Virus record (IMG/VR): IMGVR_UViG_3300022868_000009
Location: 280,635-344,634 of that record
Strand: one strand, 5' to 3'
DNA: 64,000 bases
Position 1 is the stretch's first letter; each line of letters starts with the position of its first letter. Shown in pieces: positions 19,983 to 44,783 of the stretch. The notes below the pieces were generated by a model that made no database searches, was not told the origin of the DNA, and worked only from the letters and a program-made list of their open reading frames with translations. A program made the position numbers and the translations under genes.

Positions 19983-19983
19983 A

Positions 19984-29060: not shown

Positions 29061-29087
29061 ATTTGAAAAAATTCCTTATATTTGTAT

Positions 29088-29744: not shown

Positions 29745-29777
29745 AATTGAGAACAAACTCCGTATCTTTACATAGTT

Positions 29778-29833
29778 AAAGGGCGGAGAATTTTTATAGG
29801 TTCTGGGAGAGTAGACTCCAACTTGCGATATAT
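29778..29833 (+). ncRNA. Repeated small structured RNA, copy 1
   Basis: aaagggcggag-hairpin-gagagtagactccaacttgcg immediately after promoter, no ORF. Confidence 0.6.
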
Positions 29834-29883
29834 TTTTTTTAACACAATTTTTATTTCTTAGAAGTAATCCGTATCTTTGTTAT

Positions 29884-30315
29884 ATGAAAATGAAAGTATT
29901 ATATATTAAAGCTGAAAACATGAAAGATGGTGATTTTGACATTATGTTAAAATTTGTTAATAATAATAAAAATTTAGATTATTATTTAACAGGTATAAAT
30001 ATGGGGGGTATTATGAGAACATTTATATGTATAGCCGTAAATGATGATAATTATAATGAGGTTAAAGAAAAATTATTCTCTAAATATAATACACCATCAC
30101 ATATTACTGATTTTCAAAATTATGAAGATTATAAATATCCCTATTTATCAATTGAAATATCAATGGAAAATGAACATGCAGATCATTTAACTATTCATCC
30201 TTTGAATGATGATGATGTAGATGTTAAAAATTTTGAAATAATTTATAGTAATATTGATGACATATTTGATGATATTGATATGCATATAACTACAAAAAAA
30301 CTTGGTTTATCTTAA
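29884..30315 (+). CDS. Hypothetical, C-tag variant (TKKLGLS)
   Basis: ORF track. Confidence 0.7.
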   Translation: MKMKVLYIKAENMKDGDFDIMLKFVNNNKNLDYYLTGINMGGIMRTFICIAVNDDNYNEVKEKLFSKYNTPSHITDFQNYEDYKYPYLSIEISMENEHADHLTIHPLNDDDVDVKNFEIIYSNIDDIFDDIDMHITTKKLGLS

Positions 30316-30330
30316 CTAAAAAAAATAATT

Positions 30331-30651
30331 ATGAGAAAATTTAATTGTATTAAAATAGAAAATGAAGAACATTTAAATGAATGTTATAAAAAGATAATTG
30401 ATCTTAAAACACATTATCCATATAACACTTTTGTTGATAGATTTATTATGATAAAGGGTTATTGTATTGGTTTTGAAATAGAAGAAATAGAAGAAGGAAG
30501 ATTAATTTTAACATTTTTAACTGATAATGATCTTCAACGATTTGATGAATCAAATGAATTAGCTTTTAATTGTAATTATTTTAATGATATTGATTCTTTT
30601 GTTGAATATCATAAGATTTATTTTGATTGTAGATCATTAGGGGTTTTATAA
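30331..30651 (+). CDS. Hypothetical, C-tag variant (CRSLGVL)
   Basis: ORF track. Confidence 0.75.
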   Translation: MRKFNCIKIENEEHLNECYKKIIDLKTHYPYNTFVDRFIMIKGYCIGFEIEEIEEGRLILTFLTDNDLQRFDESNELAFNCNYFNDIDSFVEYHKIYFDCRSLGVL

Positions 30652-30704
30652 GAAAGTTTAGAAGGTATTCCGTATCTTTGTATAAATATTAAAATAATAT
30701 AATT

Positions 30705-31166
30705 ATGGAATTAGATAAAGCAAGAATAAAAATGAGAGAATTGTTATCAAAACATGGTCTTGATAATTGGAGTTTTGATTTTGATAGAGCAGTTAGACGT
30801 TTAGGTCAATGTGTTTGGAAAAAGAATAGTATCATGACTCGAAAAATTACTATGTCTAGAATTATGACTGAAAGTAGAACTGATAAAGAAGTTATTAATA
30901 CAATGTTACATGAAATAGCACACGCAATAGATTTTGAAACAAGGGGTAGAAGTGCTCATGATGATGTTTGGAGATCAATTGCATTGAGTATTGGTTGTGA
31001 TGGTAATAGATCTAGTAATGTTGATGTTGAGGTTTCAGAAAAGAATTATAAGTGGTTGGCTATATGTCCAGAGCATGGTGTTTTGGGTGGATGGCAAAGA
31101 AAACCAAAAGATAATAAAATGTGTAAAAAATGTAAAAGTAAAATCATAATAAAGGAAAATAAATAA
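30705..31166 (+). CDS. SprT-like zinc metalloprotease with C-terminal Zn ribbon
   Basis: RRLGQC, TMLHEIAHA, AHDDVW, C..H...C..C. Confidence 0.88.
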   Translation: MELDKARIKMRELLSKHGLDNWSFDFDRAVRRLGQCVWKKNSIMTRKITMSRIMTESRTDKEVINTMLHEIAHAIDFETRGRSAHDDVWRSIALSIGCDGNRSSNVDVEVSEKNYKWLAICPEHGVLGGWQRKPKDNKMCKKCKSKIIIKENK

Positions 31167-31167
31167 C

Positions 31168-31995
31168 ATGAAAATAAAAGAAATAATAAGAAAAATATAT
31201 GATAAAACCGGACATGGATATACTGCTACGGCTATTAGTGTTTTAAAAAAATCTGGTTTGATGGGTGATAAAACACATCAAAAGATTAAGAACATTGTTG
31301 AGAATGAAATTCAAAGATATGAAAAAGAATATTTTGAAAAATATAAGTCTTATATTAGTGAGTATAGATATGAATCACCAACTATGATTTTATCAATAAT
31401 GTATATTGATGGTTTTAAAGGAAAATATACTGATTCTTATAAGAAGATTCAGAAAGAGATTCAAAGAATTGACACATCAGAATTAAAGTCATATAAATCT
31501 TTAATAAAGAAAGCTAAATCTACTGATCATTTGCTAAGTAAGATATCCCATTATAAAAGAGCATTATCATTTCGAGGGGATAAAAAAATTGAAGAGAAAT
31601 TGAAAGATTTAGAGGAGGATTTTCACTCAGATCAGATTATAGAGGATGAGAAGCAATTTTCAGAGAATACTATTCAATTAAAAGATTCCTCTATAATCAA
31701 AATTTATCTTGATCCGAATAACAGAAATACTTTGATGATGGAACAAGAACAAGAAGGTAAAAAAGGTTTTAGGTTAGTTAATCATTTTGCAGCTATACCA
31801 CCATTGAAAGAAACTACTGACATATTTTGGATTGGTGAAAGAACTTCAAAAGCAACTGGTTATAAACATAATTCAGAGGCTTTAATAATAATGAGAGATG
31901 AAAATGATACAATAAGAATATATTATAAAGGAAGTTTATTAATAGAAAATTATTGTGAAGAAGAATTAAAAAAAATTATAAATAAAATTAAATAA
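31168..31995 (+). CDS. Hypothetical protein
   Basis: 275-aa ORF. Confidence 0.75.
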   Translation: MKIKEIIRKIYDKTGHGYTATAISVLKKSGLMGDKTHQKIKNIVENEIQRYEKEYFEKYKSYISEYRYESPTMILSIMYIDGFKGKYTDSYKKIQKEIQRIDTSELKSYKSLIKKAKSTDHLLSKISHYKRALSFRGDKKIEEKLKDLEEDFHSDQIIEDEKQFSENTIQLKDSSIIKIYLDPNNRNTLMMEQEQEGKKGFRLVNHFAAIPPLKETTDIFWIGERTSKATGYKHNSEALIIMRDENDTIRIYYKGSLLIENYCEEELKKIINKIK

Positions 31996-32003
31996 AACAA
32001 ATT

Positions 32004-32210
32004 ATGTGGATAACAATTGGAATAATAATAGGATTAGTAATAGGTGGTTGGTTAGGATATCAGGCTTGTATGGCAAAATATAGACCTACAGAATTACTTA
32101 AATTAGCAAAAATACAAACTGAAATGATTTCAGGTGAAATAACACCGGAAAAGGCTTTAAAAGAGATACATCAAATTGAAATTGAACACCCTGAATTGAA
32201 AAAGAAATGA
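32004..32210 (+). CDS. Small membrane protein
   Basis: N-terminal TM (ITIGIIIGLVIGGWLGY). Confidence 0.7.
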   Translation: MWITIGIIIGLVIGGWLGYQACMAKYRPTELLKLAKIQTEMISGEITPEKALKEIHQIEIEHPELKKK

Positions 32211-32530
32211 AAAAGTATAAATTTATAACAGAAAGTGATTATGGTGATTTGCAACTCATCATTTATTTTGAAGATAGAGATGAATCTATTAAAGTTCAAA
32301 ATGAAATGATAGAACGTGGTTATTTAAAAATCACAGAGACAAATACACAAGATAAAGATTTATATCCATTTTCTGTTTGGTTTGAACCTAAAAATAAAAT
32401 AATGAATGGTGGTCAAAAGAATTCTGAATATATGTTAAGGTATGGTAGATCATTACATTCTGATATATTTATGGAGTATATAGATAATCTGGAAGCATTA
32501 TTTGAGTCTTTAAAAATGGGTTTGTTATAA
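32207..32530 (+). CDS. Hypothetical, C-tag (ESLKMGLL)
   Basis: ORF track. Confidence 0.8.
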   Translation: MKKYKFITESDYGDLQLIIYFEDRDESIKVQNEMIERGYLKITETNTQDKDLYPFSVWFEPKNKIMNGGQKNSEYMLRYGRSLHSDIFMEYIDNLEALFESLKMGLL

Positions 32531-32565
32531 TTTTTAACTTTTGAACAAAGTCCGTATATTTGTAT

Positions 32566-32651
32566 TATCATTAACGGTTACATGTGTCCAACGACACCTT
32601 GCAAGAGCGTAATAAGCGATGTCCAGTGTTCGATTCCCTGGTAGTGGTACA
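32566..32651 (+). ncRNA. Atypical tRNA-like RNA
   Basis: Own promoter; tatcatta/tagtggta terminal stem; TTCGATT T-loop; non-canonical D/anticodon region. Confidence 0.45.
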
Positions 32652-32770
32652 AAAATCACAAAGAAAACAAAACACAAGTATATTTTTTATTTAGGAAGGA
32701 AGTCCGTATATTTGTATAACAATAAAGAAAAATAATAATATTAATTTAAAATCTATAGGAGGATATAAAA

Positions 32771-33007
32771 ATGGCAAGAGAAAAATTAGGTAAAGTAGTA
32801 GGACAAGTTGGTGGATTCAGAATCAGAATGGAAATGAAAAATATCCAAAAAATTGAAACAGACAGATTTGGTAGAAGAAAAGTAACTGAATCTAAAAGAT
32901 GTTTCACCGGAAAATACGGAGTTTACGCAGGTAGAAACCTTTGTAAAAATGGTCTAACCAAAGAAAAAGCAATTCAATACGCAAAATCGTATAACAAAGA
33001 AAATTAG
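32771..33007 (+). CDS. Small basic hypothetical protein
   Basis: Promoter and AGGAGG; biased codons. Confidence 0.75.
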   Translation: MAREKLGKVVGQVGGFRIRMEMKNIQKIETDRFGRRKVTESKRCFTGKYGVYAGRNLCKNGLTKEKAIQYAKSYNKEN

Positions 33008-33090
33008 AGCTCCCAGTTGGAGATTCGTTCCTCAAGGTTGAAAGGTCTTGAGGGACGTCTTAATTATAATAATAATTATTAAAAATATAT

Positions 33091-33163
33091 GTATCATTAG
33101 CTCAGTTGGTAGAGCTTCTGCCTTTTAAGCAGAAAGTCCAGGGTTCGAGTCCCCGATGGTATA
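33091..33163 (+). tRNA. tRNA-Lys(UUU)
   Basis: Cloverleaf; tctgc-cTTTTaa-gcaga. Confidence 0.9.
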
Positions 33164-33198
33164 CACAATGTAACCTCCTTTCACATTGAATTAGTACT

Positions 33199-33227
33199 TC
33201 CCCACCCGAACAGGTGGGGATTTTTTT
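33199..33227 (+). terminator. Intrinsic terminator
   Basis: tccccacc-gaaca-ggtgggga followed by T-run. Confidence 0.85.
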
Positions 33228-33243
33228 TATTAGAAGGATTGTT

Positions 33244-33519
33244 GTATCTTTGTATTAGTATAAATTTTAAAAAAGGAGAAAAAAATGAATGAATTAACAA
33301 AATTTATTGAATATTTAGAAAAAACTGATATTGAGGATTTTAAACATCCTGAACAGATTAAAGAATATATTATTGGTATATGTAAATCAATTAAAAAAGA
33401 TATTATTGATTTTCATCCAATGATGGAGGATACGGAATAGGGTTTTTTAAATCAGAACAAATTCCGTATCTTTGTATTAATATAAATTTTAAAAAAGGAG
33501 AAAAAAATGAATGAATTAA
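33244..33519 (+). repeat. About 54-bp direct repeat of promoter + SD + first codons (33244-33297 and 33466-33519)
   Basis: gtatctttgtatta.tataaattttaaaaaaggagaaaaaaatgaatgaatta twice. Confidence 0.9.
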
Positions 33520-33619
33520 ACAAAATAGCAATAAATTTTATAAATATTATAAACACAATTAGTATAGACGCATTTACATTATATATGTATATTGGGTTTT
33601 TCATATAGGAGAAATTAAA

Positions 33620-33853
33620 ATGATAGTAAGTATAAGAATAAATAACTGGGAAGATTATTTCAAAATTAAGAAATATCTAATATCACTCAATTTTAAGTGG
33701 TTTAGGACAACCTATAGCCCAAAATTTGATTTAATTATACACTTATCAAGTGGTAAATTATCATATGATCCAAGAATGAATAAAAATGATAATTATGAAT
33801 ATGCTACTGTAAAAGAAATTATAAGTAAAGGATTCGGATCTTTTATTTTTTAG
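33620..33853 (+). CDS. Hypothetical protein (core resembles tagged family, no clear tag)
   Basis: I.I...EDY..I..YL.SL.FKW. Confidence 0.65.
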   Translation: MIVSIRINNWEDYFKIKKYLISLNFKWFRTTYSPKFDLIIHLSSGKLSYDPRMNKNDNYEYATVKEIISKGFGSFIF

Positions 33854-33877
33854 AAGATAATCCGTATATTTGTATTG

Positions 33878-34418
33878 ACACAAGCAGAAACAGGATTGGT
33901 CGAATTGCCTGTGTTCTTCGGAACAAACTCGTTACCTATGCTTTTTTCCTAGAGGTTGGGCGAATTAATAACAATAAACTAGGCGCCGGACAATGCGATA
34001 TTGTATGATTTTTAAGTAGTGAAATAAGAACTAACTTGGCTCTCTAACCAGATAGAGTGACTTTCGTAAGATGTTTGAAAGAAAACTATCTAGACTTTTA
34101 TGTTTCAAGATAACCGGTAATGGAATTAAAAAGTTGCTAACACACAACGCGACAAGGCTTTGTCGCGTGAGATAGATATTCAAGGTAGGAGGTATTAGAT
34201 ACACCGTCTGGACTACAAGTTTGGAAATCAACAAAGTGGTGGGATGCGAGTGGTTGACCAGTGTTAGAATTAAAGAAGCAGGTTCGAATCCTGTGAATAT
34301 GGATATAGAAAACAAAGGAGGGTTAATATTCGAGATAGAATGGCTCTAGCTTCGGCAGAGTATCGCCTCAGAAATTAAATGAACGGCTATGCTAAATAGC
34401 TTCAGTACTTTAATCGAG
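33878..34418 (+). ncRNA. Large (~540 nt) structured non-coding RNA candidate
   Basis: Promoter at ~33861, terminator at 34419, GC-richer, no + strand ORF, cTTCGg hairpins, cgcgaca/tgtcgcg stem, T-loop hairpin. Confidence 0.65.
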
Positions 34419-34452
34419 AAGCCCAATAGGAAATTACTATTGGGCTTTTTTT
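34419..34452 (+). terminator. Intrinsic terminator
   Basis: aagcccaatag...ctattgggctt followed by T-run. Confidence 0.9.
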
Positions 34453-34483
34453 ATTTGAATAATCTCCGTATATTTGTACTATC

Positions 34484-34537
34484 AAAAGGCGGAGTTTTAA
34501 AAGAACCCCGAAGAGTAGACTCCAATTTGCGTTATAT
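34484..34537 (+). ncRNA. Repeated small structured RNA, copy 2
   Basis: aaaaggcggag-gttttaaaagaac-cccgaagagtagactccaatttgcg after promoter. Confidence 0.6.
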
Positions 34538-34723
34538 ATTATATAACATTTTTTAATTCAGAATATTATTAGTATCTTTGTATTATAAATATAAAATTAG
34601 AAATTATAATTACATATTTTTTCTCTTTGAAAAAATTGGGAGGAATTTTTAATTTAAGAAAAATTTCCGTATATTTGTAGTATTAAAATGTTTAGTATAA
34701 ATTAAATAAAAAACTGAAAAAAT

Positions 34724-35368
34724 ATGGCAAAAGAAAAAAAGATTGAAGAAAAAATAGTGGAAAAATTATTAACATCTAAGAAGAAATTAGAAACAGGCAA
34801 ATGGCTTTATAGAGGATTTGTAGTTGAAAAAAATGGATCAAAATGGGTGGCTAAAGTTCACGAAGGTTCTAATATTGTTGAAGAAAAATCTGATTCTGTT
34901 GTTGATGAATTGATGACATCAGCTAAAAATATTTGTATTAGTATTGATAAGGTTTTAGGTGATTTAACAGATTCAGAAAAAACTAAACCGAAAAGAGCAA
35001 TAAAATCAAAAGCATCAAGACTTAAAGATAAAGATGAAAAAGCTAAATATATTGAAAGAGCGCAAAGAGTAGCTTATGACATTAGAAATGGTTTACAAGT
35101 ATTATCATTTCTTAATAAGAAAAAATTAAAAGATAATCTTTTAAGTGATGCTCCGAATATGAGAAAAACATTATCTAATGGTTATAGATTAGGATGGGAA
35201 AATGGTTGTTTATATAATGTACCAGAAATAACTGATGAAATTAAAGCAATCATAGAAAAGGACAAAGAGTTTATTGAAGAATTAAAAGTGAAACATGAAG
35301 ATTTAAACATATCATTTGGTATGGAAGATAATAAAATTGATATAGAAGTAACTTATAAAGAAAAATAA
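34724..35368 (+). CDS. Hypothetical protein
   Basis: 214 aa, own promoter and terminator. Confidence 0.8.
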   Translation: MAKEKKIEEKIVEKLLTSKKKLETGKWLYRGFVVEKNGSKWVAKVHEGSNIVEEKSDSVVDELMTSAKNICISIDKVLGDLTDSEKTKPKRAIKSKASRLKDKDEKAKYIERAQRVAYDIRNGLQVLSFLNKKKLKDNLLSDAPNMRKTLSNGYRLGWENGCLYNVPEITDEIKAIIEKDKEFIEELKVKHEDLNISFGMEDNKIDIEVTYKEK

Positions 35369-35386
35369 TCTCAATCTTTTTAATAT

Positions 35387-35416
35387 AAACCCCAGTTAAT
35401 CGACTGGGGTTTTTTT
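35387..35416 (+). terminator. Intrinsic terminator
   Basis: aaaccccagt...actggggttt followed by T-run. Confidence 0.9.
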
Positions 35417-35475
35417 ATTTTAAATACTTTCCGTATATTTGTATAACGAAATTAATAATTAAAAAGGAGGAAAAA

Positions 35476-35838
35476 ATGACAACATTATTATTTATAAAAA
35501 TATTAATAATTATAATGATTTTAGTAATGGGATTTATATCAGTTAGAATATGGGTTAAGCAAGTTAAATTGTTTAATAAGAGAAATAAAATGATTGCTGA
35601 TAAAAAATTAAAAACTGAAAACTATATCAAAGAAAGAACTGAATTCTTTAAGAAAAATATTGATGAGTTTGAAATAGATGAAGTCGTTAAAGAAAAAGCA
35701 TTTAACTTTGAAGCAATTATATTAGATAAAACAGCAAACAGTCTTTTTGTTCACACAAAGAAAAGAAAACCAGAAGGAACTGATTGTACAGGATGGTTTT
35801 CTATTGATGATTTCAACAGAAGATTTAAAAAACAATAA
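35476..35838 (+). CDS. Membrane-anchored hypothetical protein
   Basis: N-terminal TM, SD upstream. Confidence 0.75.
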   Translation: MTTLLFIKILIIIMILVMGFISVRIWVKQVKLFNKRNKMIADKKLKTENYIKERTEFFKKNIDEFEIDEVVKEKAFNFEAIILDKTANSLFVHTKKRKPEGTDCTGWFSIDDFNRRFKKQ

Positions 35839-35921
35839 TAATAATTAAAATTAAAACTAGAAACTATGAAAAATTATGAAATTGAAGATGATAGAGTAAT
35901 GTTCTAAAAACATTGAAACAT

Positions 35922-35993
35922 GGTCCGTTCGTCTATTGCGAAGGACGTTGGGTTTTCAGCCCAGAAAGAGGGGTTCGATTCCCCTACGGACTA
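35922..35993 (+). tRNA. tRNA-Glu(UUC)
   Basis: Cloverleaf; ttggg-ttTTCag-cccag. Confidence 0.9.
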
Positions 35994-36000
35994 CTAAATT

Positions 36001-36084
36001 GGGTAGGTATGCAAGAGGCTAAAGCAGGCGGTCTGTAAAACCGTTACGTAAGATCTACCGGTGGTTCAAATCCATCTCTACCCA
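36001..36084 (+). tRNA. tRNA-Tyr(GUA)
   Basis: gcggt-ctGTAaa-accgt, long variable arm. Confidence 0.9.
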
Positions 36085-36091
36085 CACATAT

Positions 36092-36167
36092 CTAGATGTT
36101 CCTCCAGCCAGGCATAGGGGCGTGACTTGGACTCACGTGTTCACAGGTTCGAATCCTGTCATTTAGA
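36092..36167 (+). tRNA. tRNA-Pro(UGG), atypical D arm
   Basis: cgtga-ctTGGac-tcacg; C1-G72, A73. Confidence 0.8.
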
Positions 36168-36176
36168 CTAAAATAT

Positions 36177-36250
36177 TGTGATGTAGCTCAGCTAGGTAGA
36201 GCACCAGATTGAAGATCTGGGTGTCGGTGGTTCAAATCCATCTATCACAA
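36177..36250 (+). tRNA. tRNA-Phe(GAA)
   Basis: ccaga-ttGAAga-tctgg. Confidence 0.9.
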
Positions 36251-36256
36251 CAAAAT

Positions 36257-36331
36257 GCCTTTATGATGTAAAGGATAGCATAAAAGTTTTCTAAACTTTT
36301 CGTCTAGGTTCGAATCCTAGTAAGGGTACCA
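36257..36331 (+). tRNA. tRNA-Arg(UCU)
   Basis: aaagt-ttTCTaa-acttt; encoded CCA. Confidence 0.88.
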
Positions 36332-36440
36332 ATATCAAAATAAATTACAAATTATTGAATACTATTTTTAGTTTAAGAAAAATATTCGTATATTTGTATT
36401 ATAATTAAATTAAAAATTAAACTAATAGGAGGAAAATAAA

Positions 36441-36593
36441 ATGGCAATTAAAAGATGTACTTGTAAAAATGAATTTCAAGATGAGAAATATGGTAAAGGA
36501 AAAAGAGTATTTACTCAATCTAGCGTACCTAAAGAAGGTGGAACCGCAAAAGAAGGTAAATCAAGATGTACTGTATGTGGATCAACAAAATAA
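36441..36593 (+). CDS. 50-aa Zn-ribbon protein missed by the ORF track
   Basis: MAIKRCTCKNEFQDEKYGKGKRV...RCTVCGSTK; promoter and AGGAGG upstream. Confidence 0.8.
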   Translation: MAIKRCTCKNEFQDEKYGKGKRVFTQSSVPKEGGTAKEGKSRCTVCGSTK

Positions 36594-36685
36594 TACGAAT
36601 TATTTTTTATTTAAGTATAAAGTTCGTATGTATAACAATTAAACAATTAAATTATTTATTAATAACACTAAAACAAAAAATTAAA

Positions 36686-37000
36686 ATGGCAAACAAAAAA
36701 GACTTAACAAACGCAATCGCTTTAGCAACAGGTAAAACTAAAAAATCAAGTAAAGACCTAGTTGATGTTATCATGGCATCTATTAAAGCTGAATTATCAA
36801 ATGGTGAAGGTTCAATCGTGAAATTAGTTAATTTCGGAACATTCAAAGTAGTAAACAGAAAAGCAAGAAAAGGTAGAAACCCTAGAACTGGTGAATCAAT
36901 CAACATACCTTCAAAAAATGTTGTTAGATTTAAAGCTGGTAAAGCATTGAAAGAAGCAGTTGATTATACTGCCGAAGAAAGAGAAGAATTAGGACTATAA
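36686..37000 (+). CDS. hup: HU-family DNA-binding protein, copy 2 (start corrected)
   Basis: Near-identical to 28696 protein. Confidence 0.95.
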   Translation: MANKKDLTNAIALATGKTKKSSKDLVDVIMASIKAELSNGEGSIVKLVNFGTFKVVNRKARKGRNPRTGESINIPSKNVVRFKAGKALKEAVDYTAEEREELGL

Positions 37001-37017
37001 TCTACTCAAACATAAAG

Positions 37018-37049
37018 AAAACCCTGACTTTGACGGTCAGGGTTTTTTT
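37018..37049 (+). terminator. Intrinsic terminator
   Basis: aaaaccctgac...gtcagggtttt. Confidence 0.9.
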
Positions 37050-37092
37050 ATGTAGAATAATTTTCGTATCTTTGTATTAAGTAAAATTAATT

Positions 37093-37467
37093 ATGAACCT
37101 ATTTAAAATAAAAATTATGGGAAAAAAAGAAAAAAAACAAATAGGCTTTAAACAAAATTATCAAATTGAAGCTGACAAATTAAAAGAAGAACCAAAAGAA
37201 GAAGAAAATATAAATAAAGAAGAAGAAAAAGGTCAAGCTGCACTTGAAGCAATGGCTAAACTTACCGGACAATTTCAAATGTCTACAAATGAAATATTAA
37301 TATCAACAAAATTAAAAATGTATGTAGATTTAATTAAATCAGAAGAATTCATAATAAAAACATTAGAAGAAAAAGAAGCATTTATAGGTGAATTGTTATT
37401 TTTACAATCATTAAGCACAGAAATGACCACATTAAAATCACAAATGCAATCAGTTATAAACAAATAA
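37093..37467 (+). CDS. Hypothetical protein
   Basis: Promoter upstream. Confidence 0.7.
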   Translation: MNLFKIKIMGKKEKKQIGFKQNYQIEADKLKEEPKEEENINKEEEKGQAALEAMAKLTGQFQMSTNEILISTKLKMYVDLIKSEEFIIKTLEEKEAFIGELLFLQSLSTEMTTLKSQMQSVINK

Positions 37468-37480
37468 AAAAGGGAAAATT

Positions 37481-37690
37481 ATGTTATCAAAAGAAGAATT
37501 TAAATCGCTAGAAGAAACAAAATTACTTGCGTCTAATGTTAAAAAAATGTTAAATGATGATTGCGAATTATTTATCAAATACACAAACGAACCAACAGGT
37601 AAAATTAAACAATTATTGAAAAGAACTAAAGATCCTTATTTAGAGTTTATTTTAAATAATGTTTTACAAACAAGATATGGAAAGAAGTAA
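37481..37690 (+). CDS. Hypothetical protein
   Basis: ORF track. Confidence 0.65.
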   Translation: MLSKEEFKSLEETKLLASNVKKMLNDDCELFIKYTNEPTGKIKQLLKRTKDPYLEFILNNVLQTRYGKK

Positions 37691-37758
37691 TTTTTTTTAT
37701 CTTTTGAAGAATATCCGTATATTTGTATATTGTTAAACTAAAAAAGGAGGAAATTAAT

Positions 37759-38025
37759 ATGGCACGTAAAATAAATTGGAATAAAAATAAAGCTAAATCA
37801 GAAATTAAAAAAAATGTAGAAATTGTATCTGAAAAGAAAACTATTAAATTTGCTTATAAAATTGGATTAATCAAACGAAAAGGTGGTATAACATCTTATA
37901 ACGCAATTGATAAAGACGCAATGGAAACCAAAGTATTGGAAATAATGGAAAAAGATAATTATAAGAAAATCCTAGTTTTAAACAATAAAACCAGAGAACG
38001 TAAAGTATATTTATCAGAATTATAA
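37759..38025 (+). CDS. Basic hypothetical protein (start corrected)
   Basis: AGGAGG before ATG 37759. Confidence 0.75.
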   Translation: MARKINWNKNKAKSEIKKNVEIVSEKKTIKFAYKIGLIKRKGGITSYNAIDKDAMETKVLEIMEKDNYKKILVLNNKTRERKVYLSEL

Positions 38026-38123
38026 TTATAATATAATTTTTTACCTGGAATATTATCCGTATATTTATATCAACAAACAACAATTAAATTATTTATTAAC
38101 TAACATTAAAACAAAAAATTAAA

Positions 38124-38336
38124 ATGCCAAACATCAAAAAATGTAAAATAGGAGAATTTGTACAAATCATCACTAATGGACAAGCGAACCGTAGAGGTCG
38201 TATAGTATCTAAAACAGAGAAACGAGTTTATTGTTTCATCATGGAAGGTGGAAAATATTTACGTGACGAGAATGGTCGTGAAAAACGTTTTTTAGTTAAC
38301 CCTACAAACATTAAGTTTTACAACTCAGCAGAGTAA
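38124..38336 (+). CDS. Small basic beta-barrel-like hypothetical protein
   Basis: Shares 5' leader with HU copy 2. Confidence 0.75.
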   Translation: MPNIKKCKIGEFVQIITNGQANRRGRIVSKTEKRVYCFIMEGGKYLRDENGREKRFLVNPTNIKFYNSAE

Positions 38337-38378
38337 AAGAAAAAAGAGAACCTCCATTTAATTGGAGGTTCTTTACAT

Positions 38379-38449
38379 TGACCCATGGTATAATGGTAGT
38401 ATACCTGCCTTTGAAGTAGGTGGTTTTGGTTCGAATCCTGATAGGTCAA
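38379..38449 (+). tRNA. tRNA-Gln(UUG)
   Basis: cctgc-ctTTGaa-gtagg. Confidence 0.85.
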
Positions 38450-38838
38450 CAATTATTAACTTTAAAAAATTTAAAATATGGATATTTGTATAATAATAAT
38501 ATCACTTTTATTTATATTATGTAACGTTTTTGTTTTAGGATATTATTTTGAAAGAAATAAATCTAAAAAGGTGTCTTATTACAAATGTTTTATTGAGTGT
38601 TTAGAATTGTTTAAATATTTTTAACCCGAAAAACCATAGTTCGTTTTTTATACACCTAATTAATAACATGAAACAAAATGTGGGTACAAACCTTATATAA
38701 TAAAAGATATGGGTGGTTATGATAAAGACTTTGTTGAAAAAGAATTTGAAAACTTTAAAAATATTTTTTAATTAAGAAACAAAATCGTATATTTGTTCTA
38801 TAATAGAAAATGAAAGATATAAGAATCCAAAAATATAT

Positions 38839-38910
38839 TGCGAGGTGGAGCAGGGGTAGCTCGCTAGGCTCATAACCTAGAGGCCGTCGGTTCAAATCCG
38901 ACTCTCGCTA
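38839..38910 (+). tRNA. tRNA-Met(CAU), initiator-like
   Basis: ctagg-ctCATaa-cctag; mismatched 1:72 pair; fMet-like D arm. Confidence 0.88.
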
Positions 38911-38968
38911 CTAAGTAGGTCTATATGGCTTACCGAATATGTCTCTTAACACTACGGTGTTCAAAAGG

Positions 38969-38992
38969 AAAAGCCCGATAAGGGCTTTTTTT
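38969..38992 (+). terminator. Intrinsic terminator
   Basis: aaaagccc-gataa-gggctttt. Confidence 0.85.
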
Positions 38993-39045
38993 ATTGGAAT
39001 ATATTCCGTATATTTGTATAGTTAAAATAAAAAGTAAAAAGTATT

Positions 39046-40029
39046 ATGGAAAGAAAATTAGCAACAATAGCAAAAATTAATGACATCAACCCTATTAAAG
39101 GAGCTGATGTAATTGAAGTAGCTACTATTCGAGGATGGAAAGTTGTAGTTAAAAAAGATGAATTCAAAATTGGAGATCTTTGTGTGTATTGTGAAATAGA
39201 CTCAGTTATGCCTCCAAAAGAAGAATTTAAATTCCTAGAAAATAAAAAATATAGGATTAAAACTATTAAACTCAGAGGACAAGTATCTCAAGGTATAGCA
39301 TTTCCATTGTCTATTTTACCATTAGGTTGGCACTCAATTATAGATCAAGATGTAACAGAACTTCTTGAAGTAATTAAATGGGAACCAGTAATACCAGCTT
39401 GTTTAGCAGGTAAAATAAAAGGTCTTTTTCCTTCTCATTCTCTAAAAACAGATGAAGAAAGAATACAAAATCTTATTGAAGAATTTCCTAATTTAAAAAC
39501 TAAAACATATATAGCAACAGAAAAACTTGATGGTTCTTCTGCAACATTTTATCTTAAAGATAATATATTTGGTGTATGTTCTAGAAACTTAGATATATTA
39601 GAAGATGATACTAATTCATTTTGGAAAGTAGCAAGAGAATTGAAAATCGAAGAATTAATGAGAGAAAATGGTCTTGATAATTATAACCTCCAAGGAGAAC
39701 TTATTGGAGAAGGTATACAAAAAAACAAATATAAAATCAAAGGACAAACAGTAAGATTCTTTAGAATGTTTAATATTAAAACACATTCATTTATAAATTA
39801 TAGTGACTTTATTTTATTAATTAAAGCAATGGAATTACAAACTGTTCCTATTGTAGAAGTTAATTTAGAACTACCTGAAACAATAGATGAACTTCTTAAA
39901 TATGCTGAAGGATTATCAAAACTTAATAAAAATATACAAAGAGAAGGTATTGTCTTTGTAGCTGAAGAAACAGAAGATAGAGAATCATTTAAAGTAATAT
40001 CAAATAAATTTTTATTGAAAAATGAATAA
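39046..40029 (+). CDS. RNA ligase, DRB0094/Rnl5 family
   Basis: RKLATIAKI..I.PI.GAD.IE, KTDEERIQN, TEKLDGSS, QGELIG, REGIV, FKVISNKFLL. Confidence 0.93.
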   Translation: MERKLATIAKINDINPIKGADVIEVATIRGWKVVVKKDEFKIGDLCVYCEIDSVMPPKEEFKFLENKKYRIKTIKLRGQVSQGIAFPLSILPLGWHSIIDQDVTELLEVIKWEPVIPACLAGKIKGLFPSHSLKTDEERIQNLIEEFPNLKTKTYIATEKLDGSSATFYLKDNIFGVCSRNLDILEDDTNSFWKVARELKIEELMRENGLDNYNLQGELIGEGIQKNKYKIKGQTVRFFRMFNIKTHSFINYSDFILLIKAMELQTVPIVEVNLELPETIDELLKYAEGLSKLNKNIQREGIVFVAEETEDRESFKVISNKFLLKNE

Positions 40030-40216
40030 AGAACTAGAATTAACAGGAAAACAAGTAAAACTCATATCAATGGATGACCCTTATACTAAATTGAAAAATG
40101 GAGATAAAGGTATAATAATCTTTGTCGATGATATAGGTCAAATACATGTACAATGGGACAATGGATCATCACTTGCATTAATACCAGGTGAAGATAAGTA
40201 TGAAATATTAGATTGA
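40022..40216 (+). CDS. DUF4314-like protein
   Basis: VKLISMDDPY..L..GD.G....VDDIGQIHVQWDNGSSLALIPGED. Confidence 0.85.
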   Translation: MNKELELTGKQVKLISMDDPYTKLKNGDKGIIIFVDDIGQIHVQWDNGSSLALIPGEDKYEILD

Positions 40217-40323
40217 TGGAACTTCCAGAAATGGGCGCTATTTCGAGCATAAGATGTGAATTGCCCTGATATCTCTGCAGACAAACCCCTATAAGGGGAG
40301 AGAAAATTAGCATTCTTCCATCA
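40214..40323 (+). ncRNA. About 110-nt structured RNA candidate
   Basis: tgatggaa/ttccatca closing stem, gggcg/tgccc, tctct..cccct-ata-agggg-agaga. Confidence 0.45.
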
Positions 40324-40362
40324 TTTTTAATCTTTGAATAATTTCCATATCTTTACATAAGT

Positions 40363-40416
40363 AAAGGGCGGGAATTTTTTAGGTTCTGGAAGAGTAGACT
40401 CTAATTTATGATATAT
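40363..40416 (+). ncRNA. Repeated small structured RNA, copy 3
   Basis: aaagggcgggaattttttaggttctggaagagtagactct after promoter. Confidence 0.55.
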
Positions 40417-40481
40417 TCACCCCAATTTTTTATATTCAATAATTATCCGTATATTTATACAAAATTAAAAAACCTAAAGAA

Positions 40482-40668
40482 ATGAAAAAAAAAATATTTA
40501 ACACAAAAATTAGAAGAATTAACAACTCGGACTTATAAATATAAAAGGACTAAACTTGATGTAATTATGTTTAAACTTAAAGAAGCATTAAGTAATGATG
40601 AATTGGCAGATCTATTAGAAATCAGATTAGTAGATATTTTAGAAGGACAGAAATTGGGTCTATTGTAA
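40482..40668 (+). pseudogene. C-tag gene remnant (ends EGQKLGLL)
   Basis: Promoter, ATG followed by an A-run, tag out of frame. Confidence 0.5.
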
Positions 40669-40725
40669 TTTTTAATTCTTGAAAGATATCCTTATCTTTG
40701 TATAAACAATTAAAGATAAAATATC

Positions 40726-40917
40726 ATGGCAAAAAGAAAAAGAAAAAGAACAAAAAAAATCAAAGAATTTAAAATAACTTTAGATGACTTTCTAAAAGCT
40801 AATCGTATAGGATCTAGAGAGGCAGAATTAGAACAAAATGGAACTGGTTGGAAATCTAATCGAAAAGCATATAAAAATAAAAAATCATATTCACGCAAAG
40901 ATAAACACAGAAATTAA
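40726..40917 (+). CDS. Small highly basic protein
   Basis: KANR.GSREAELE...GW......KNKK.Y.RK.KH. Confidence 0.75.
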   Translation: MAKRKRKRTKKIKEFKITLDDFLKANRIGSREAELEQNGTGWKSNRKAYKNKKSYSRKDKHRN

Positions 40918-41186
40918 TGGAATTCAATCAATTATCATATCAAATAATAGTTACGATGAATTAATGGAAGAACTTAAAGGTTTTATTGATTTTAAAGAAA
41001 ATGATAGTTTACGACCGAATATCGTGACTATAAACAAGATTTTAAAGCAACATGGGATCATTATGAAGTTTATAAACGTAAAGTTATATGGGATAGTAAT
41101 GATTATATATTTAATATGAATGAACAGTCTATTAAAGAAATAATTAATAAAATTAAAGAAATAATACCATATAAATTAAAACTATT

Positions 41187-41513
41187 ATGATTAAACTATT
41201 AGCAATAAAAATATATTCTAAAACAAGATTATTACAAATATTAGATGATCTTAAAAAGAACTATAATATACATAAAACATACAATAATGATTGGGTAGGT
41301 TTTAAAGGTATAAGAGAAGGTGGTATATTTGTATATATCAATATTGAATCAAATATAAAGTTATATGGTTGGGATTATATTTACAAAGATTATGATAAGG
41401 AATATGTACCAAGTACTATCAGCAATGGTTTAAAACACAAAACATTAATAATAATAGATAACGATTTACCAATATCAGCAATAATAGAATCAAATAAATT
41501 TAACTTAATATAA
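41187..41513 (+). CDS. Hypothetical, C-tag variant (ESNKFNLI); paralog of 53504/54920
   Basis: AI.IYS...L...W.GF..I..GG. Confidence 0.8.
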   Translation: MIKLLAIKIYSKTRLLQILDDLKKNYNIHKTYNNDWVGFKGIREGGIFVYINIESNIKLYGWDYIYKDYDKEYVPSTISNGLKHKTLIIIDNDLPISAIIESNKFNLI

Positions 41514-41526
41514 AAAAGGAGACAAA

Positions 41527-41805
41527 ATGATTGAAACTAAAACAAAAGAATTAGTAATAAATAAAACAACTATTAAGAAATCATTAATAATTCATGAATG
41601 TAAAAGATGTGGAAATACACACCTAATACATATTGAATATGAGATTGAAAACATAGATACATCTTGGGAAGAAGAAATGATTGCATTCTCTGATGGTTAT
41701 TGGTGTGAAAAATGTAATCATGTTATAAGTGAAGATGAAAATCATACTTCCACTTATGTTATTACTTCATCTACAAATGATGATTTTGATATAAGAAAAA
41801 TATAA
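41527..41805 (+). CDS. Zn-ribbon hypothetical protein
   Basis: CKRC...CEKC. Confidence 0.7.
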   Translation: MIETKTKELVINKTTIKKSLIIHECKRCGNTHLIHIEYEIENIDTSWEEEMIAFSDGYWCEKCNHVISEDENHTSTYVITSSTNDDFDIRKI

Positions 41806-41806
41806 T

Positions 41807-41890
41807 GCCAAAATGGCGAAATAGGTAGACGCGCCAGGTTTAGAACCTGGTGTCCATTAGGACGTGTGGGTTCGAGTCCCACCTTTGGTA
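41807..41890 (+). tRNA. tRNA-Leu(UAG)
   Basis: ccagg-ttTAGaa-cctgg, long variable arm. Confidence 0.92.
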
Positions 41891-41906
41891 CAAAATAATT
41901 AAAAAT

Positions 41907-42221
41907 ATGAAAAATATAGAAGAATATTATTTTATAACAATTGAAACTAAAAAATGTAACAATGGAAATATTAATGAAATATTAGACTATTGTATAAAAA
42001 TAGGACTTCAACTTCAGTATCCACGGCAAAGCTACGAAACTGATGAATATTTAGTAATGTGTTTCAAAAGTTATCATAAAGCAATTGCTAATTGTGATGC
42101 TGGTATAGTTTACGGAACTAATGATTTATTAGAAGAACTAGATTATATGTTATCACCAGAAGAATTTTTATCTGGTGAATATGACTACTTATTCGATGCA
42201 GGAAAATTAAACTTAATTTAA
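41907..42221 (+). CDS. Hypothetical, C-tag variant (DAGKLNLI), start corrected
   Basis: ATG downstream of tRNA. Confidence 0.75.
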   Translation: MKNIEEYYFITIETKKCNNGNINEILDYCIKIGLQLQYPRQSYETDEYLVMCFKSYHKAIANCDAGIVYGTNDLLEELDYMLSPEEFLSGEYDYLFDAGKLNLI

Positions 42222-42278
42222 AAATATAACATTTAAACTTTTTATTCCAGAATAATCTCCGTATATTTGTACTATAAT

Positions 42279-42332
42279 AAAGGCTGAGAGATTAAACTCC
42301 CCCAGAAGAGTAGACTCCAACTTGCGTTATAT
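42279..42332 (+). ncRNA. Repeated small structured RNA, copy 4
   Basis: aaaggctgagagattaaactcccccagaagagtagactccaacttgcg after promoter. Confidence 0.6.
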
Positions 42333-42642
42333 CCCCGCACACAAGAATAATATATACCAATAAACAGATTCGTGATTCGACTGCTTGCGTCAAAGCCTCG
42401 AATCACGATCATGTTGATATATCTAAGTTACATGTTTAAATTCAATTTTATTACATTTAAGTTTTTTTACCTGAAAAAAATCCGTATATTTGTATAACAA
42501 GATTGGAAATAATCTTACACTTTTCTTGAAAATTTCAAGAAATAAAACTTTAAAAATATTTTTAATGTAAGAAAAATTTCACTATATTTGTATATAACAA
42601 TTAAGAAAAATTATTTATTAACCTTTTAAAACCTTAAAGACT

Positions 42643-42951
42643 ATGGCAAACAGAAAAGACCTTATCAATGGTATCGCATCAGCGACCGGTAAAACAAAAA
42701 AAGATTCTAAAATCGCTTTAGAAGCAATGCTTTCAATTATGAAAAAAGAATTAGGCGATGGCGGAGAAATTAAACTTGTAAATTTTGGTACCTTTAAAAT
42801 CGTAGCAAGAAAAGCTCGAAAAGGAAGAAATCCTAGAACAGGTGAATCAATCAACATTCCTGCAAAGAATGTAGTTAAATTTAAAGCTGGTAAAGGCCTT
42901 AAAGAAGCGGCTGATTACACAGCAGAAGAAAGAGCTGAATTAGGACTATAA
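42643..42951 (+). CDS. hup: HU-family DNA-binding protein, copy 3
   Basis: NFGTFK..ARKARKGRNPRTGESINIPAK. Confidence 0.95.
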   Translation: MANRKDLINGIASATGKTKKDSKIALEAMLSIMKKELGDGGEIKLVNFGTFKIVARKARKGRNPRTGESINIPAKNVVKFKAGKGLKEAADYTAEERAELGL

Positions 42952-42969
42952 ACCTAATAATTCTATAAT

Positions 42970-42998
42970 AAAAAGAGGATTTATTAATCCTCTTTTTT
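42970..42998 (+). terminator. Intrinsic terminator
   Basis: aaaaagaggatt...aatcctcttttt. Confidence 0.85.
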
Positions 42999-43170
42999 AT
43001 TGCGATAAACACTATTTAGATTTAGTCTAAATAAAAATAATAATTCAAATTATTATATTAAGAAGATTATCCCTATATTTAATAAATAAATTAAAAAATT
43101 ATGCAAAAAGTAGAAATAATATTAAGTGTGGTGGATATGGATTGTTTCATTAAAAATAATAATAACAATT

Positions 43171-43803
43171 ATGATTAAAATAGGAGAAAAGAAAATAATA
43201 CATAAAGATTGTATATACTTTGAAAATAGTATATGTTTTGGAGATGGCGATACATATAGTACCGTTAAATATGAAATACCTAACAATGAAGTAGGACACA
43301 ATACAATTTTACTTGCATTATTCTTAGGATATTATGATGAATATTCAGATGGAGGTATAAAAAATCTACCAAATTGGATTCAAGATGAATTAAAAACATT
43401 AGACCTTCTAATTCTAAATAGATGGAATATAAATAAAAAAACAAATGTTAAAGATACAGATGAAAGAGAACTTATGTATATCTTTAATGATTCTGAAGAA
43501 CATTCAGGATATTTTGGTTGGGTTGATGGTACAGATATATATTATTATGATAAAGATGGTGTATCACATGATATTGAAATATTTGGTATATCATTCGATA
43601 AACAAACTAATCATACAGCAATAGATATAATGCTTAATATATATGCATGGTTTCTAAGTAAGTGCAAAGAAATAACAATGGAAAAATTTAAAGACTTAGT
43701 AAGATTTGAATATAGAGTAAAATTCAAGGAAATAATAGAGGACAAACCCGAACTAAAAGACCTTAAAATTAAAATAGAAGCCGCTAACCTTGGCTTATTA
43801 TAA
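43171..43803 (+). CDS. Hypothetical, GDGD...YYYDKDGV family with C-tag (EAANLGLL)
   Basis: Paralog of 22303/26950. Confidence 0.75.
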   Translation: MIKIGEKKIIHKDCIYFENSICFGDGDTYSTVKYEIPNNEVGHNTILLALFLGYYDEYSDGGIKNLPNWIQDELKTLDLLILNRWNINKKTNVKDTDERELMYIFNDSEEHSGYFGWVDGTDIYYYDKDGVSHDIEIFGISFDKQTNHTAIDIMLNIYAWFLSKCKEITMEKFKDLVRFEYRVKFKEIIEDKPELKDLKIKIEAANLGLL

Positions 43804-43854
43804 TATTGGTTTGCCATAACTCCAAGTTATCTGAAAATGTACAATGAGTAGGCA

Positions 43855-43884
43855 CAACCCCACCTTTAAAGGTGGGGTTTTTTT
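43855..43884 (+). terminator. Intrinsic terminator
   Basis: aaccccacctt-ta-aaggtggggtt followed by T-run. Confidence 0.9.
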
Positions 43885-44204
43885 ATTTAGAAGAATTTCC
43901 TTACCTTTATTTAAATTAAAAAGAAAAAATTATGTTAGAATATACAAAAAATGGAGTAATTATAAGTGGTCAATTTCATTCACTTGAGAGCATCATCAGA
44001 AAAGTAAACCAAATGAAGAAATTGATGAACTAACAAAGAAATGGAAAGTATGAAAAAAGAATATGAACATACGAGAAATTAACAAATTTGGACCAACACT
44101 AATTAAATAAAGAAATGTAATTTTTTAATTAAACAAATTTACTATTGTAAAATATAAATCATAATATTTGATATGTTAATCGGTTAAAAAACAAATTAAA
44201 AATT

Positions 44205-44666
44205 ATGATTTTAACAATAATTATTACAACCTTAGCAAGCGTATTATCAACTTTGGTGGTTGGCTATTTTATATGGTCAGGTATTAGGGCACGTAAGTTA
44301 AATCAAAAGGTCAAGGATAATACATTAAGTATTACACAAAATGAAAGATATTGTCAAGATGCAGATGATTCACTTAGTGAATCTATAGATGAAGTGAATA
44401 TTCGTGTTGATAATAATGTAAATGAATTAAGTGAAAGAATTCATTCTATGTATGGTCAGAATTCAGATAATAGAGATGAATTAGATAGAAAAATTCATAA
44501 AGAATTAGATAAAAGATTTGATAAAGTTTGGCAAACAATTCAAAATAATTCTTTATTCCAAAAGTATAATATTATAACTGCGTCGGGAAATATTGATTCA
44601 GATAAAGTTACAAAACTTGCTATTGAGAATGATGGTGAAGCCGTGAAAGATGAAGAAATAAAATAA
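44205..44666 (+). CDS. Membrane-anchored coiled-coil protein
   Basis: N-terminal TM. Confidence 0.75.
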   Translation: MILTIIITTLASVLSTLVVGYFIWSGIRARKLNQKVKDNTLSITQNERYCQDADDSLSESIDEVNIRVDNNVNELSERIHSMYGQNSDNRDELDRKIHKELDKRFDKVWQTIQNNSLFQKYNIITASGNIDSDKVTKLAIENDGEAVKDEEIK

Positions 44667-44735
44667 GAAATATAACTGATTAACAATCAAATATTTTTTA
44701 TATTAGAAGAAAATCCGTATCTTTATACTATTAAA

Positions 44736-44783
44736 AAAGGCTGAGGATTTAAACTTCCCTAGAAGAGTAGACTTCAACATGCA
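44736..44783 (+). ncRNA. Repeated small structured RNA, copy 5
   Basis: aaaggctgaggatttaaacttccctagaagagtagacttcaacatgc after promoter. Confidence 0.55.

Follow-up and report, generated by a model that had tools for sequence, protein, structure and literature searches.

Analysis of a 64,000-nt window of a 345-kb salt-lake phage identified five copies of a small, individually promoted RNA gene that matches no family in Rfam 15 and is shared with many other phages of Bacteroidota, including cultured ones; the function of the RNA is unknown. The window is 100% identical to two ~345-kb IMG/VR phage contigs from salt-lake metagenomes. All five copies lie on the + strand, with conserved cores starting at 29808, 34512, 40391, 42307, and 44764 (c1 to c5, respectively), and the observation of five dispersed, promoted elements made in a preliminary description of the sequence is confirmed. 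The sequence AGAGTAGACT occurs exactly five times in the window and nowhere else, even when one mismatch is allowed. A covariance model, one of the checks proposed in advance, recovers exactly these five sites with filters off (51–68 bits), while the next best place in the window scores 15.6 bits. Each copy begins 7–10 nt after a Bacteroidota-type TAnnTTT[GA] box contained within the longer motif CCGTATMTTT, which has 42 matches in the window against 8.9 expected, a count reached by 0 of 100 shuffles.

The conserved part of the element is about 55 nt, which is not a measured transcript length, and consists of a 5′ AAAGG, a hairpin (P1) of free sequence, a near-invariant module AGAGUAGACUCCAAC, and a short tail that is often followed by U-runs. 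In c1 (29778–29840, 67.6 bits), the −7 box TATCTTTA at 29763–29770 (within CCGTATCTTT) precedes AAAGG at 29778–29782, P1 at 29784–29806, the core at 29808–29821, the tail CUUGCG at 29822–29827, and a U8 run at 29833–29840. In c2 (34485–34554, 65.1 bits), the box TATATTTG at 34469–34476 precedes AAAGG at 34485–34489, P1 at 34490–34510, the core at 34512–34525, and the tail UUUGCG at 34526–34531, followed by an A+U hairpin and a U-run at 34549–34554. In c3 (40363–40431, 53.9 bits), the box TATCTTTA lies at 40348–40355, where the window has CCATAT and other strains have CCGTAT (40347 A>G), and is followed by AAAGG at 40363–40367, P1 at 40369–40389, the core at 40391–40404, the tail UUUAUG, and a U-run at 40426–40431. 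In c4 (42279–42332, 51.4 bits), the box TATATTTG at 42262–42269 precedes AAAGG at 42279–42283, P1 at 42284–42305, the core at 42307–42320, and the tail CUUGCG at 42321–42326, with no U-run but with a strong hairpin further on at 42368–42410. In c5 (44736–44788, 58 bits), the box TATCTTTA at 44718–44725 precedes AAAGG at 44736–44740, P1 at 44741–44762, the core at 44764–44777, and the tail CAUGCA, and A+U hairpins follow to about 44850. Two copies depart from the consensus given in the preliminary description: c3 has CUCU in the core and the tail UUUAUG, while c5 has CUUC in the core and the tail CAUGCA. The c5 copy looks degraded, with two core changes plus 44770 G>A in some strains. The next promoter lies 45–200 nt downstream of c1 to c4, and about 400 nt without an ORF follow c5.

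Relatives of the element were sought in metagenome contigs and, as had been suggested beforehand, in phage genomes. A pattern search recovered 69 stretches in metagenome contigs, comprising about 38 distinct true members, and the covariance model added 11 members that the pattern had missed. About 40 distinct relatives occur in roughly 30 metagenome contigs (recovered sequences are designated by L numbers), in the 635-kb phage LR745206, and in Tenacibaculum phage Larrie, which has two copies; a weaker match occurs in Cellulophaga phages phiST and phi13:1. Pattern scans of IMG/VR found only this phage plus one chance match, and megablast of 16.5 kb of the region against GenBank phages gave no match. 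RNA ligase relatives in IMG/VR (L012 and L013, 59% identity) carry neither the element nor CCGTAT promoters. In contrast to its recurrence in phages, near-exact copies are essentially absent from 185,579 bacterial and archaeal species genomes, in which a pattern scan returned two stretches, one a chance match and the other on a 3-kb MAG contig. No Rfam 15 family matches the five sites or the elements of 12 typical relatives at E values up to 10. A full-text search for the core found only synthetic GAGUA reference hairpins, and literature searches by sequence and by topic found no description of the family.

A DNA protein-binding site with no significant covariation had been named at the outset as an outcome that would refute an RNA element, whereas P1 covaries strongly. 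All 7 modelled pairs show changes on both sides, 0 of 500 shuffles reach the covariation score, and 79% of cells pair, against 26–58% when the partner columns are slid. A hairpin is predicted at the same place in 46 of 48 distinct sequences, and it is more stable on the promoter strand than on the complement in 34 of 40 sequences (Wilcoxon p = 2e-4). Strain variants keep the pairing: a C to U change gives a G.U pair in L070, and G>T occurs together with C>A in reads aligned to c4, although only DNA contigs were used for this comparison. The hairpin is supported by comparison between sequences and not by stability, since the folding energies of the five copies are no better than those of shuffles (z-scores −0.95 to +0.06). 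RNAalifold, run on a MAFFT alignment and on the model-fitted alignment, returns only GAG/CUC because P1 is not in register there. The variable segment had been read as possibly multi-allelic, a reading that is not supported, as it is simply the upper half of a hairpin that drifts with compensating changes, and copies in other phages have near-identical hairpins within one genome (L029 and L046).

The core and tail offer further possible pairings. GAG-UAGA-CUC is self-complementary, as noted in the preliminary description, but it is nearly invariant, partly because the search pattern required it, and so cannot be tested by covariation; LR745206 has AGAU in place of AGAG, which breaks GAG/CUC. 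Alternatively, the tail can pair with GUAG of the core, with 76% of cells pairing against 29–50% when slid, and the type B variant (AGAGGGUAG) lengthens this helix in Larrie and in L075. Neither of the two pairings shows two-sided covariation. A closing helix between the 5′ AAAGG and CCUU of the tail is no better than slid controls, and the tail has no consistent partner by RNAduplex (mean z −0.4). Pairing of the 3′ strand of the hairpin with the tail looked like covariation in L029 but fails in L058, L092, and the U-type members.

The element is always intergenic, and a TAnnTTT[GA] box lies within 40 nt upstream in 27 of 44 distinct matches. Both flanking ORFs are on the opposite strand in at least 9 loci, and in the annotated genome of Larrie every neighboring gene is on the other strand, with copy 1 ending at a clear terminator hairpin and copy 2 at a U6 run; a terminator was also found in L031. 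With its own promoter, intergenic position, conserved structure on the transcribed strand, and own stop, the element fits the description of a stand-alone small RNA gene, although no RNA-seq run was listed and no transcript has been seen. The early expression proposed for the family is likewise only inferred, from the host-type promoters. In the salt-lake phage, all five copies point the same way as the genes, and the terminator scan found no G+C-rich terminator after any copy, only U-runs or A+U hairpins, so that the 3′ ends are undefined and read-through into the next gene, and hence a role in cis, cannot be excluded here. A cis-acting 5′ leader element that modifies or protects the transcript it belongs to, for example a put/nut-like processive antiterminator or a 5′ stabilizer, with transcription from the first promoter reading on into the downstream genes, would fit this arrangement; its hairpin followed by a conserved single strand recalls boxB/boxA, and in L060, L065, L075, L061, and L074 the element is the 3′ part of a longer leader. 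We consider this reading unlikely, because in the antiparallel loci and in Larrie the element runs into a terminator with nothing downstream to read through to, and because in the window a second promoter stands between the element and the next gene.

A signal acting at the DNA level, either a protein-binding site or a terminator for the opposite strand, or a selfish promoter-plus-hairpin module that spreads without serving the phage, was also evaluated. On the − strand, the hairpin followed by CCUUU scores as terminator-like at c2 and c4, the region is rich in duplications, and c5 seems to be decaying. However, P1 keeps pairing through G.U pairs that would be A.C mismatches on the other strand (34 against 6 sequences), and its free sequence argues against sequence-specific binding of a protein to the palindrome. 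In addition, the promoter is conserved upstream, strains restore its consensus at c3, and a 15-nt core held nearly constant from 77-kb to 635-kb phages implies selection, making this reading improbable.

No protein family travels with the element across lineages. Its neighbors are ORFans, HU, SprT-like, and DUF4314 proteins, and a weak sub-threshold WYL_2 hit next to the element in L046 has no counterpart in the window. ARAGORN and Rfam find 9 tRNA genes in the window, lying between the copies but none at the elements, and linkage to tRNA genes is not general; the likeness of GGGCUG...CAG...CUCCA to an alanine acceptor stem is no more than a resemblance. Likenesses to hammerhead, HDV-like, twister, and pistol RNAs, K-turns, Y RNA, and Cas12a and Cas13b repeats were considered by eye and dropped for lack of the defining motifs and of Rfam hits.

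Together these results indicate that the five elements are best explained, with roughly even confidence, as paralogous genes for a stand-alone small RNA, whose likely transcripts run 65–135 nt and would be read by the host RNA polymerase from Bacteroidota-type promoters. The analysis establishes family membership, covariation of the hairpin, the strand, association with promoters, stand-alone gene organization, and absence from bacterial chromosomes at near-exact identity, whereas transcription itself, the 3′ ends, action in trans, and the existence and nature of a partner are inferences. In this view, pairing of the tail with GUAG would present ACUCCAAC in a loop just before a U-rich stop, the invariant 3′ module would be the working part, and P1 would be a scaffold. 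We propose that the RNA works in trans by binding a partner conserved across the phylum, either a host protein or RNA or a widely shared phage protein, and that several copies would serve to raise the dose, as expected for a stoichiometric binder or sponge. No partner was identified, and protein structures and complexes were not modelled because no candidate justified it. The interpretation given in the preliminary description is thus partly supported: a family of individually promoted non-coding RNAs with a covarying hairpin and no match to an Rfam 15 family is borne out, while the multi-allele reading and mimicry of a CRISPR repeat or a type III antitoxin found no support.

The invariant stretch could alternatively be a seed that pairs with a conserved host RNA, since a 15-nt stretch conserved across phages of many hosts suits such a target. 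The core pairs over 11 contiguous bases with E. coli 16S rRNA 1306–1318, in the 5′ strand of helix 42 (−18.5 kcal/mol), and 23 of 1000 shuffles do as well against 16S, 23S, and 5S together. This lead is doubtful, as p of about 0.02 comes from a single post hoc test against E. coli, with no Bacteroidota rRNA compared, and that strand is base-paired inside the mature ribosome. Neither the complement of the core nor that of the loop is enriched in the phage window. More speculatively, and in our judgment unlikely, the module could be a phylum-wide RNA weapon that, made in high dose from several promoters, would capture or block one conserved component of Bacteroidota cells, such as an RRM-type RNA-binding protein, a defense nuclease, or nascent 16S rRNA at helix 42. 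This would be an RNA-based take-over or counter-defense shared by phages from 77 kb to 635 kb, with no host-encoded template.

Small RNAs encoded by phages are known, but few families are conserved beyond one phage group, and almost nothing is known for phages of Bacteroidota, whose hosts lack Hfq, ProQ, and CsrA. Here, a core that barely changes is found across a cultured 77-kb siphovirus, a 345-kb salt-lake jumbo phage, a 635-kb megaphage, and many marine and freshwater contigs, a pattern that, with the promoters and the absence from bacterial chromosomes at near-exact identity, points to a conserved interaction with the host cell. Two culturable pairs, Larrie on T. larymnensis and, by the weaker match, phiST and phi13:1 on C. 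baltica, make the question directly accessible. At the least, the family deserves an Rfam entry and annotation in flavobacterial phage genomes, where the loci are now blank.

Among known systems, the FopS/GibS small RNAs of Bacteroides, which are bound by the RRM protein RbpB (PMC11697453), are likewise a multicopy family of short RNAs in the same phylum, each with its own canonical Bacteroidota sigma-A promoter, a conserved single-stranded stretch, and a terminator hairpin. FopS binds a phylum-typical RNA-binding protein, which suggests a kind of partner, and one FopS copy was seen in a phage. FopS is, however, chromosomal, with 12–15 copies per Bacteroides genome; its authors state that it was deposited in Rfam, yet no Rfam 15 model matches here, and sequence likeness was not tested beyond Rfam. 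The order of parts is also reversed, with the hairpin first and the conserved stretch second in the phage family. RNA anti-CRISPRs (Racr, solitary repeat units) and phage pseudo-ToxI are short phage-encoded RNAs with their own promoter that act by titration, and mimicry of this kind was suggested in the preliminary description; such a mimic would soak up Cas proteins or a ToxN-like toxin. The present elements are solitary, promoted, multicopy, and confined to phages by the pattern used, with a hairpin-plus-handle layout broadly like a repeat. However, Racr and pseudo-ToxI copy a host repeat or antitoxin, and the comparison with host repeats and antitoxin arrays that had been called for found no match to Rfam CRISPR-DR or ToxI models at E up to 10 and no array in the species genomes, although that scan needed a near-exact core and a looser mimic is not excluded. 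The units in the window are single and 2–6 kb apart, unlike the tandem 34–45-nt repeats of type III antitoxins, and only L061 and L074 carry 1.5 tandem units. The same core also serves phages of different host genera, such as Tenacibaculum and Cellulophaga, and of salt-lake, freshwater, and marine samples, whereas CRISPR and antitoxin repeats are system-specific. Mimicry is therefore not supported and appears improbable; binding to Cas proteins and blocking of interference were not assayed. HK022 put and lambda nut sites also place a hairpin plus a conserved stretch directly behind early promoters, several per genome, and act in cis on the polymerase that reads on into genes. The required position between a promoter and same-strand genes is seen in the window but not in the 9 antiparallel loci or in Larrie, so that the evidence on this point is divided and does not settle it either way. 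Finally, the small stable RNAs of T4-like phages (species 1 and 2, rnaC/rnaD) are non-coding RNAs of unknown function lying among tRNA genes in a large virulent phage; no sequence or structure relation to them was tested or seen, and the T4 RNAs are longer and are processed from the tRNA operon, not individually promoted.

Examination of the five sites confirmed that they read as the preliminary description had stated, so its observation holds. The sequence AGAGTAGACT occurs five times in the 64 kb, always on the + strand and always exact, and no further site appears when one mismatch is allowed. Each of the five copies (c1 to c5, in order along the window) starts 7–10 nt after a TAnnTTT[GA] box, the −7 element typical of Bacteroidota, which is embedded in a longer phage consensus, CCGTATMTTT. 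This consensus has 42 matches against 8.9 expected, nearly all of them on the + strand between 22 and 46 kb. An alignment of the five copies with their flanks shows the same extended promoter before the element and again after it. Copies c1 and c3 are close to each other, as are c4 and c5, while c2 stands alone; c3 and c5 depart from the consensus given in the preliminary description in the last bases of the core and in the tail. Single-sequence folding gives no support, with z-scores between −0.95 and +0.06. Alignment of contigs from other salt-lake and marine runs revealed strain differences at two of these loci: 40347 A>G restores the CCGTAT promoter consensus of c3 in all four runs, and 44770 G>A changes the core of c5 (UAGA to UAAA) in two runs.

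The window has a G+C content of about 25%, and its large ORFs match a baseplate wedge protein, thymidylate synthase, a glycosyltransferase, and an Rnl1-type RNA ligase. It is 100% identical to two IMG/VR contigs of 348 and 345 kb, and it was recovered from many salt-lake metagenome runs and a few marine ones. It is therefore part of a jumbo phage, and the promoters, together with the relatives described below, point to a Bacteroidota host, an assignment that rests on these promoters and on cultured relatives. The search pattern finds the same five copies, and no others, in the full-length contigs. On the + strand between 22000 and 46000, about 35 copies of the extended Bacteroidota-type promoter (T-run, GAATAAT, nTCCGTATMTTTG) stand one in front of almost every small gene, forming a very dense array of separately promoted, presumably early genes. 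The RNA ligase (39046–40029; phrog_968, E = 9e-75) lies among nine tRNA genes (33091–41891), including tRNA-Lys(UUU); this is the kit used by T4 against anticodon nucleases, although a polynucleotide kinase was not searched for here. Three paralogous HU/IHF-type DNA-binding proteins (28696–29010, 36566–37000, and 42643–42951; PF00216, E = 1e-31 for the third) are 72–81% alike at the DNA level, and one of them lies just downstream of c4. Tandem duplicate ORFs (29082–29408 and 29439–29744; 69% DNA identity) lie just upstream of c1, and the region evolves by local duplication. About 400 nt without an ORF follow c5 (44790–45200), with several A+U hairpins and a degenerate promoter (CCGTATCCT at 44913), and a strong 13-bp hairpin without a U-run lies 40 nt after c4 (42368–42410); either could hold further non-coding RNAs.

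In order to determine whether the element occurs beyond this phage, metagenome contigs were scanned with a pattern combining the 5′ motif, a gap, and the core, which returned 69 stretches. After removal of chance matches and duplicates, about 38 distinct elements remain, from roughly 30 contigs with G+C contents from 25 to about 45%. Most sit just behind a TAnnTTTG box, with 27 of 44 distinct matches having one within 40 nt. A covariance model, which had been proposed in advance as a check on the family, was built on these sequences and finds exactly the five copies in the window, at 51–68 bits against 15.6 bits for the next place with filters off. Over all loci it finds 60 good matches, eleven of which the pattern had missed. 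Those eleven show what can vary in the apparently invariant parts: AAAGG becomes CAAGG, UAAGG, or GACGG, the run of G is 2–4 long, CCAAC becomes CCGAC, GACU becomes GAUU, and a second type (type B) has AGAGGGUAG. In one contig, L078, two convergent, overlapping candidates were found at 946–1016 (+) and 1001–1071 (−), the second of which is divergent (core AGAGUGUACUCCGAC, 24 bits, E = 0.05).

Among GenBank phages, the 635-kb uncultured phage LR745206 has one copy in the 50 kb searched, with AGAU in the core, and Tenacibaculum phage Larrie (Cbastvirus), which infects T. larymnensis LAR25, has two copies, one of each type, at 18780–18851 and 19413–19483 of ON950054. Cellulophaga phages phiST and phi13:1, of which phiST infects C. 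baltica, hold a divergent candidate that scores only 18.7 bits (E = 0.06, although E-values of this purpose-built model are rough) but has a 12-nt exact core and a hairpin in place. The Rfam comparison, also named beforehand as a test, was negative, as no Rfam 15 model matches any member. The same pattern found only two stretches in 185,579 species genomes, a chance match in a Firmicute and a 3-kb MAG contig. The RNA is therefore a phage gene, not a captured host RNA, at least at near-exact identity, the collection scans having needed a near-exact core. The suggestion that it acts as a decoy by mimicry is not supported by these scans for a near-exact core.

The hairpin, P1, starts with CUG or CGG and ends with YAG or CCG, and often has a G.U pair at the third position and an A.G or A.C mismatch at the fourth. 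An upper stem of free sequence follows, and the loop is GNRA-like or CAAAA-like in many relatives, while in this phage the loops are A+U-rich. A lack of significant covariation had been set out as grounds for rejecting an RNA in favor of a protein-binding site in DNA; on the model-fitted alignment, all seven modelled pairs change on both sides, 0 of 500 shuffles reach the covariation score, and pairing falls from 79% to 26–58% when the partner columns are slid, although that alignment leans towards the structure and includes a few chance rows. Independently of the model, a hairpin is predicted at the same place in 46 of 48 distinct sequences. It is more stable on the promoter strand in 34 of 40 sequences (p = 2e-4), which argues for selection on the RNA and not on the DNA palindrome. 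Strain variants agree with this pairing: a C to U change gives a G.U pair in the contig L070, and in contigs aligned to c4, G>T appears together with C>A across the stem.

The core has two mutually exclusive pairings. The first, GAG-UAGA-CUC, is the one picked by RNAalifold, and the C to U variants are compatible with it, but LR745206 breaks it. In the second, GUAG pairs with CUAC, CUGC, or UUGC of the tail, with ACUCCAAC as the loop; here 76% of cells pair against 29–50% when slid, but only one side varies. Type B lengthens this second helix, and in Larrie it is followed by U6. We favor the second pairing, as a terminator-like hairpin that displays ACUCCAAC, although it is weak in this phage. 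A closing helix between the 5′ end and the tail is not supported, and the tail has no consistent partner.

The element never overlaps a credible ORF. In nine loci both flanking ORFs lie on the opposite strand, and in four more the only available flank does. In the contig L031, the element stands between two opposite-strand genes, has its own promoter, and shares a two-way terminator. In Larrie, nearly all genes, and all those near the copies, are on one strand, while both copies are on the other strand, in unannotated gaps, each with a TAnnTTTG box. Copy 2 of Larrie lies within a 1.1-kb stretch without annotated genes (in 18600–20370), which also holds two pairs of ~90-nt direct repeats, at 18636/19262 and 19600/19775, carrying opposite-strand promoter-like boxes. 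This organization argues against a pure leader or antiterminator role for the family as a whole. In the window, however, the copies are co-oriented with the genes and lack a strong terminator, so a cis effect in this phage stays possible. In some lineages the element is the 3′ domain of a longer RNA. In one lineage with Bacteroides-like TACCTTTGCA promoters (L061 2845–2918 (−), L074 644–716 (+), and L041), it is preceded by a 12-codon mini-ORF and a hairpin, and a second, partial copy of the core follows about 37 nt later, making 1.5 tandem units.

Neighboring proteins give no lead to function. They are ORFans, three HU paralogues, an SprT-like protein, DUF4314, and the RNA ligase, and no family travels with the element across lineages. 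A 63-aa very basic protein (40726–40917) and the SprT-like metalloprotease (30705–31166) are nonetheless shared with freshwater phage contigs that also carry the RNA (L035, L071, L081, and L089; L031 and L046), which shows shared early-gene modules between these phages. The upper hairpin is not conserved between orthologous copies, and copies within other genomes can be near-identical; therefore, the proposal of multiple alleles falls, and the working part must be the conserved module. One post-hoc lead for a base-pairing role is that the core is complementary to E. coli 16S rRNA 1306–1318, the 5′ strand of helix 42, with 11 contiguous base pairs between GUAGACUCCAA and 16S AUUGGAGUCUGCA. As 23 of 1000 shuffles do as well (empirical p about 0.02), this lead is weak, and it was not checked in a real host. 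The core also coincides with the synthetic GAGUA reference hairpin used in chemical-probing constructs.

Together, these results partly support the interpretation in the preliminary description: the reading as an undescribed non-coding RNA family is supported and much extended, whereas the reading as a decoy by mimicry is not. Several points fit a trans-acting RNA needed in quantity that recognizes something conserved in the host phylum, namely several copies with strong promoters, a core conserved across phages of different host genera, and no host counterpart. The analysis does not fix the mechanism, no transcript or expression data were found, and we consider it about as likely as not that this is a stand-alone trans-acting RNA that binds a conserved partner through the invariant module. 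The nearest analogue in the hosts is the FopS/GibS family, which is bound by the RRM protein RbpB, although the present family is not FopS.
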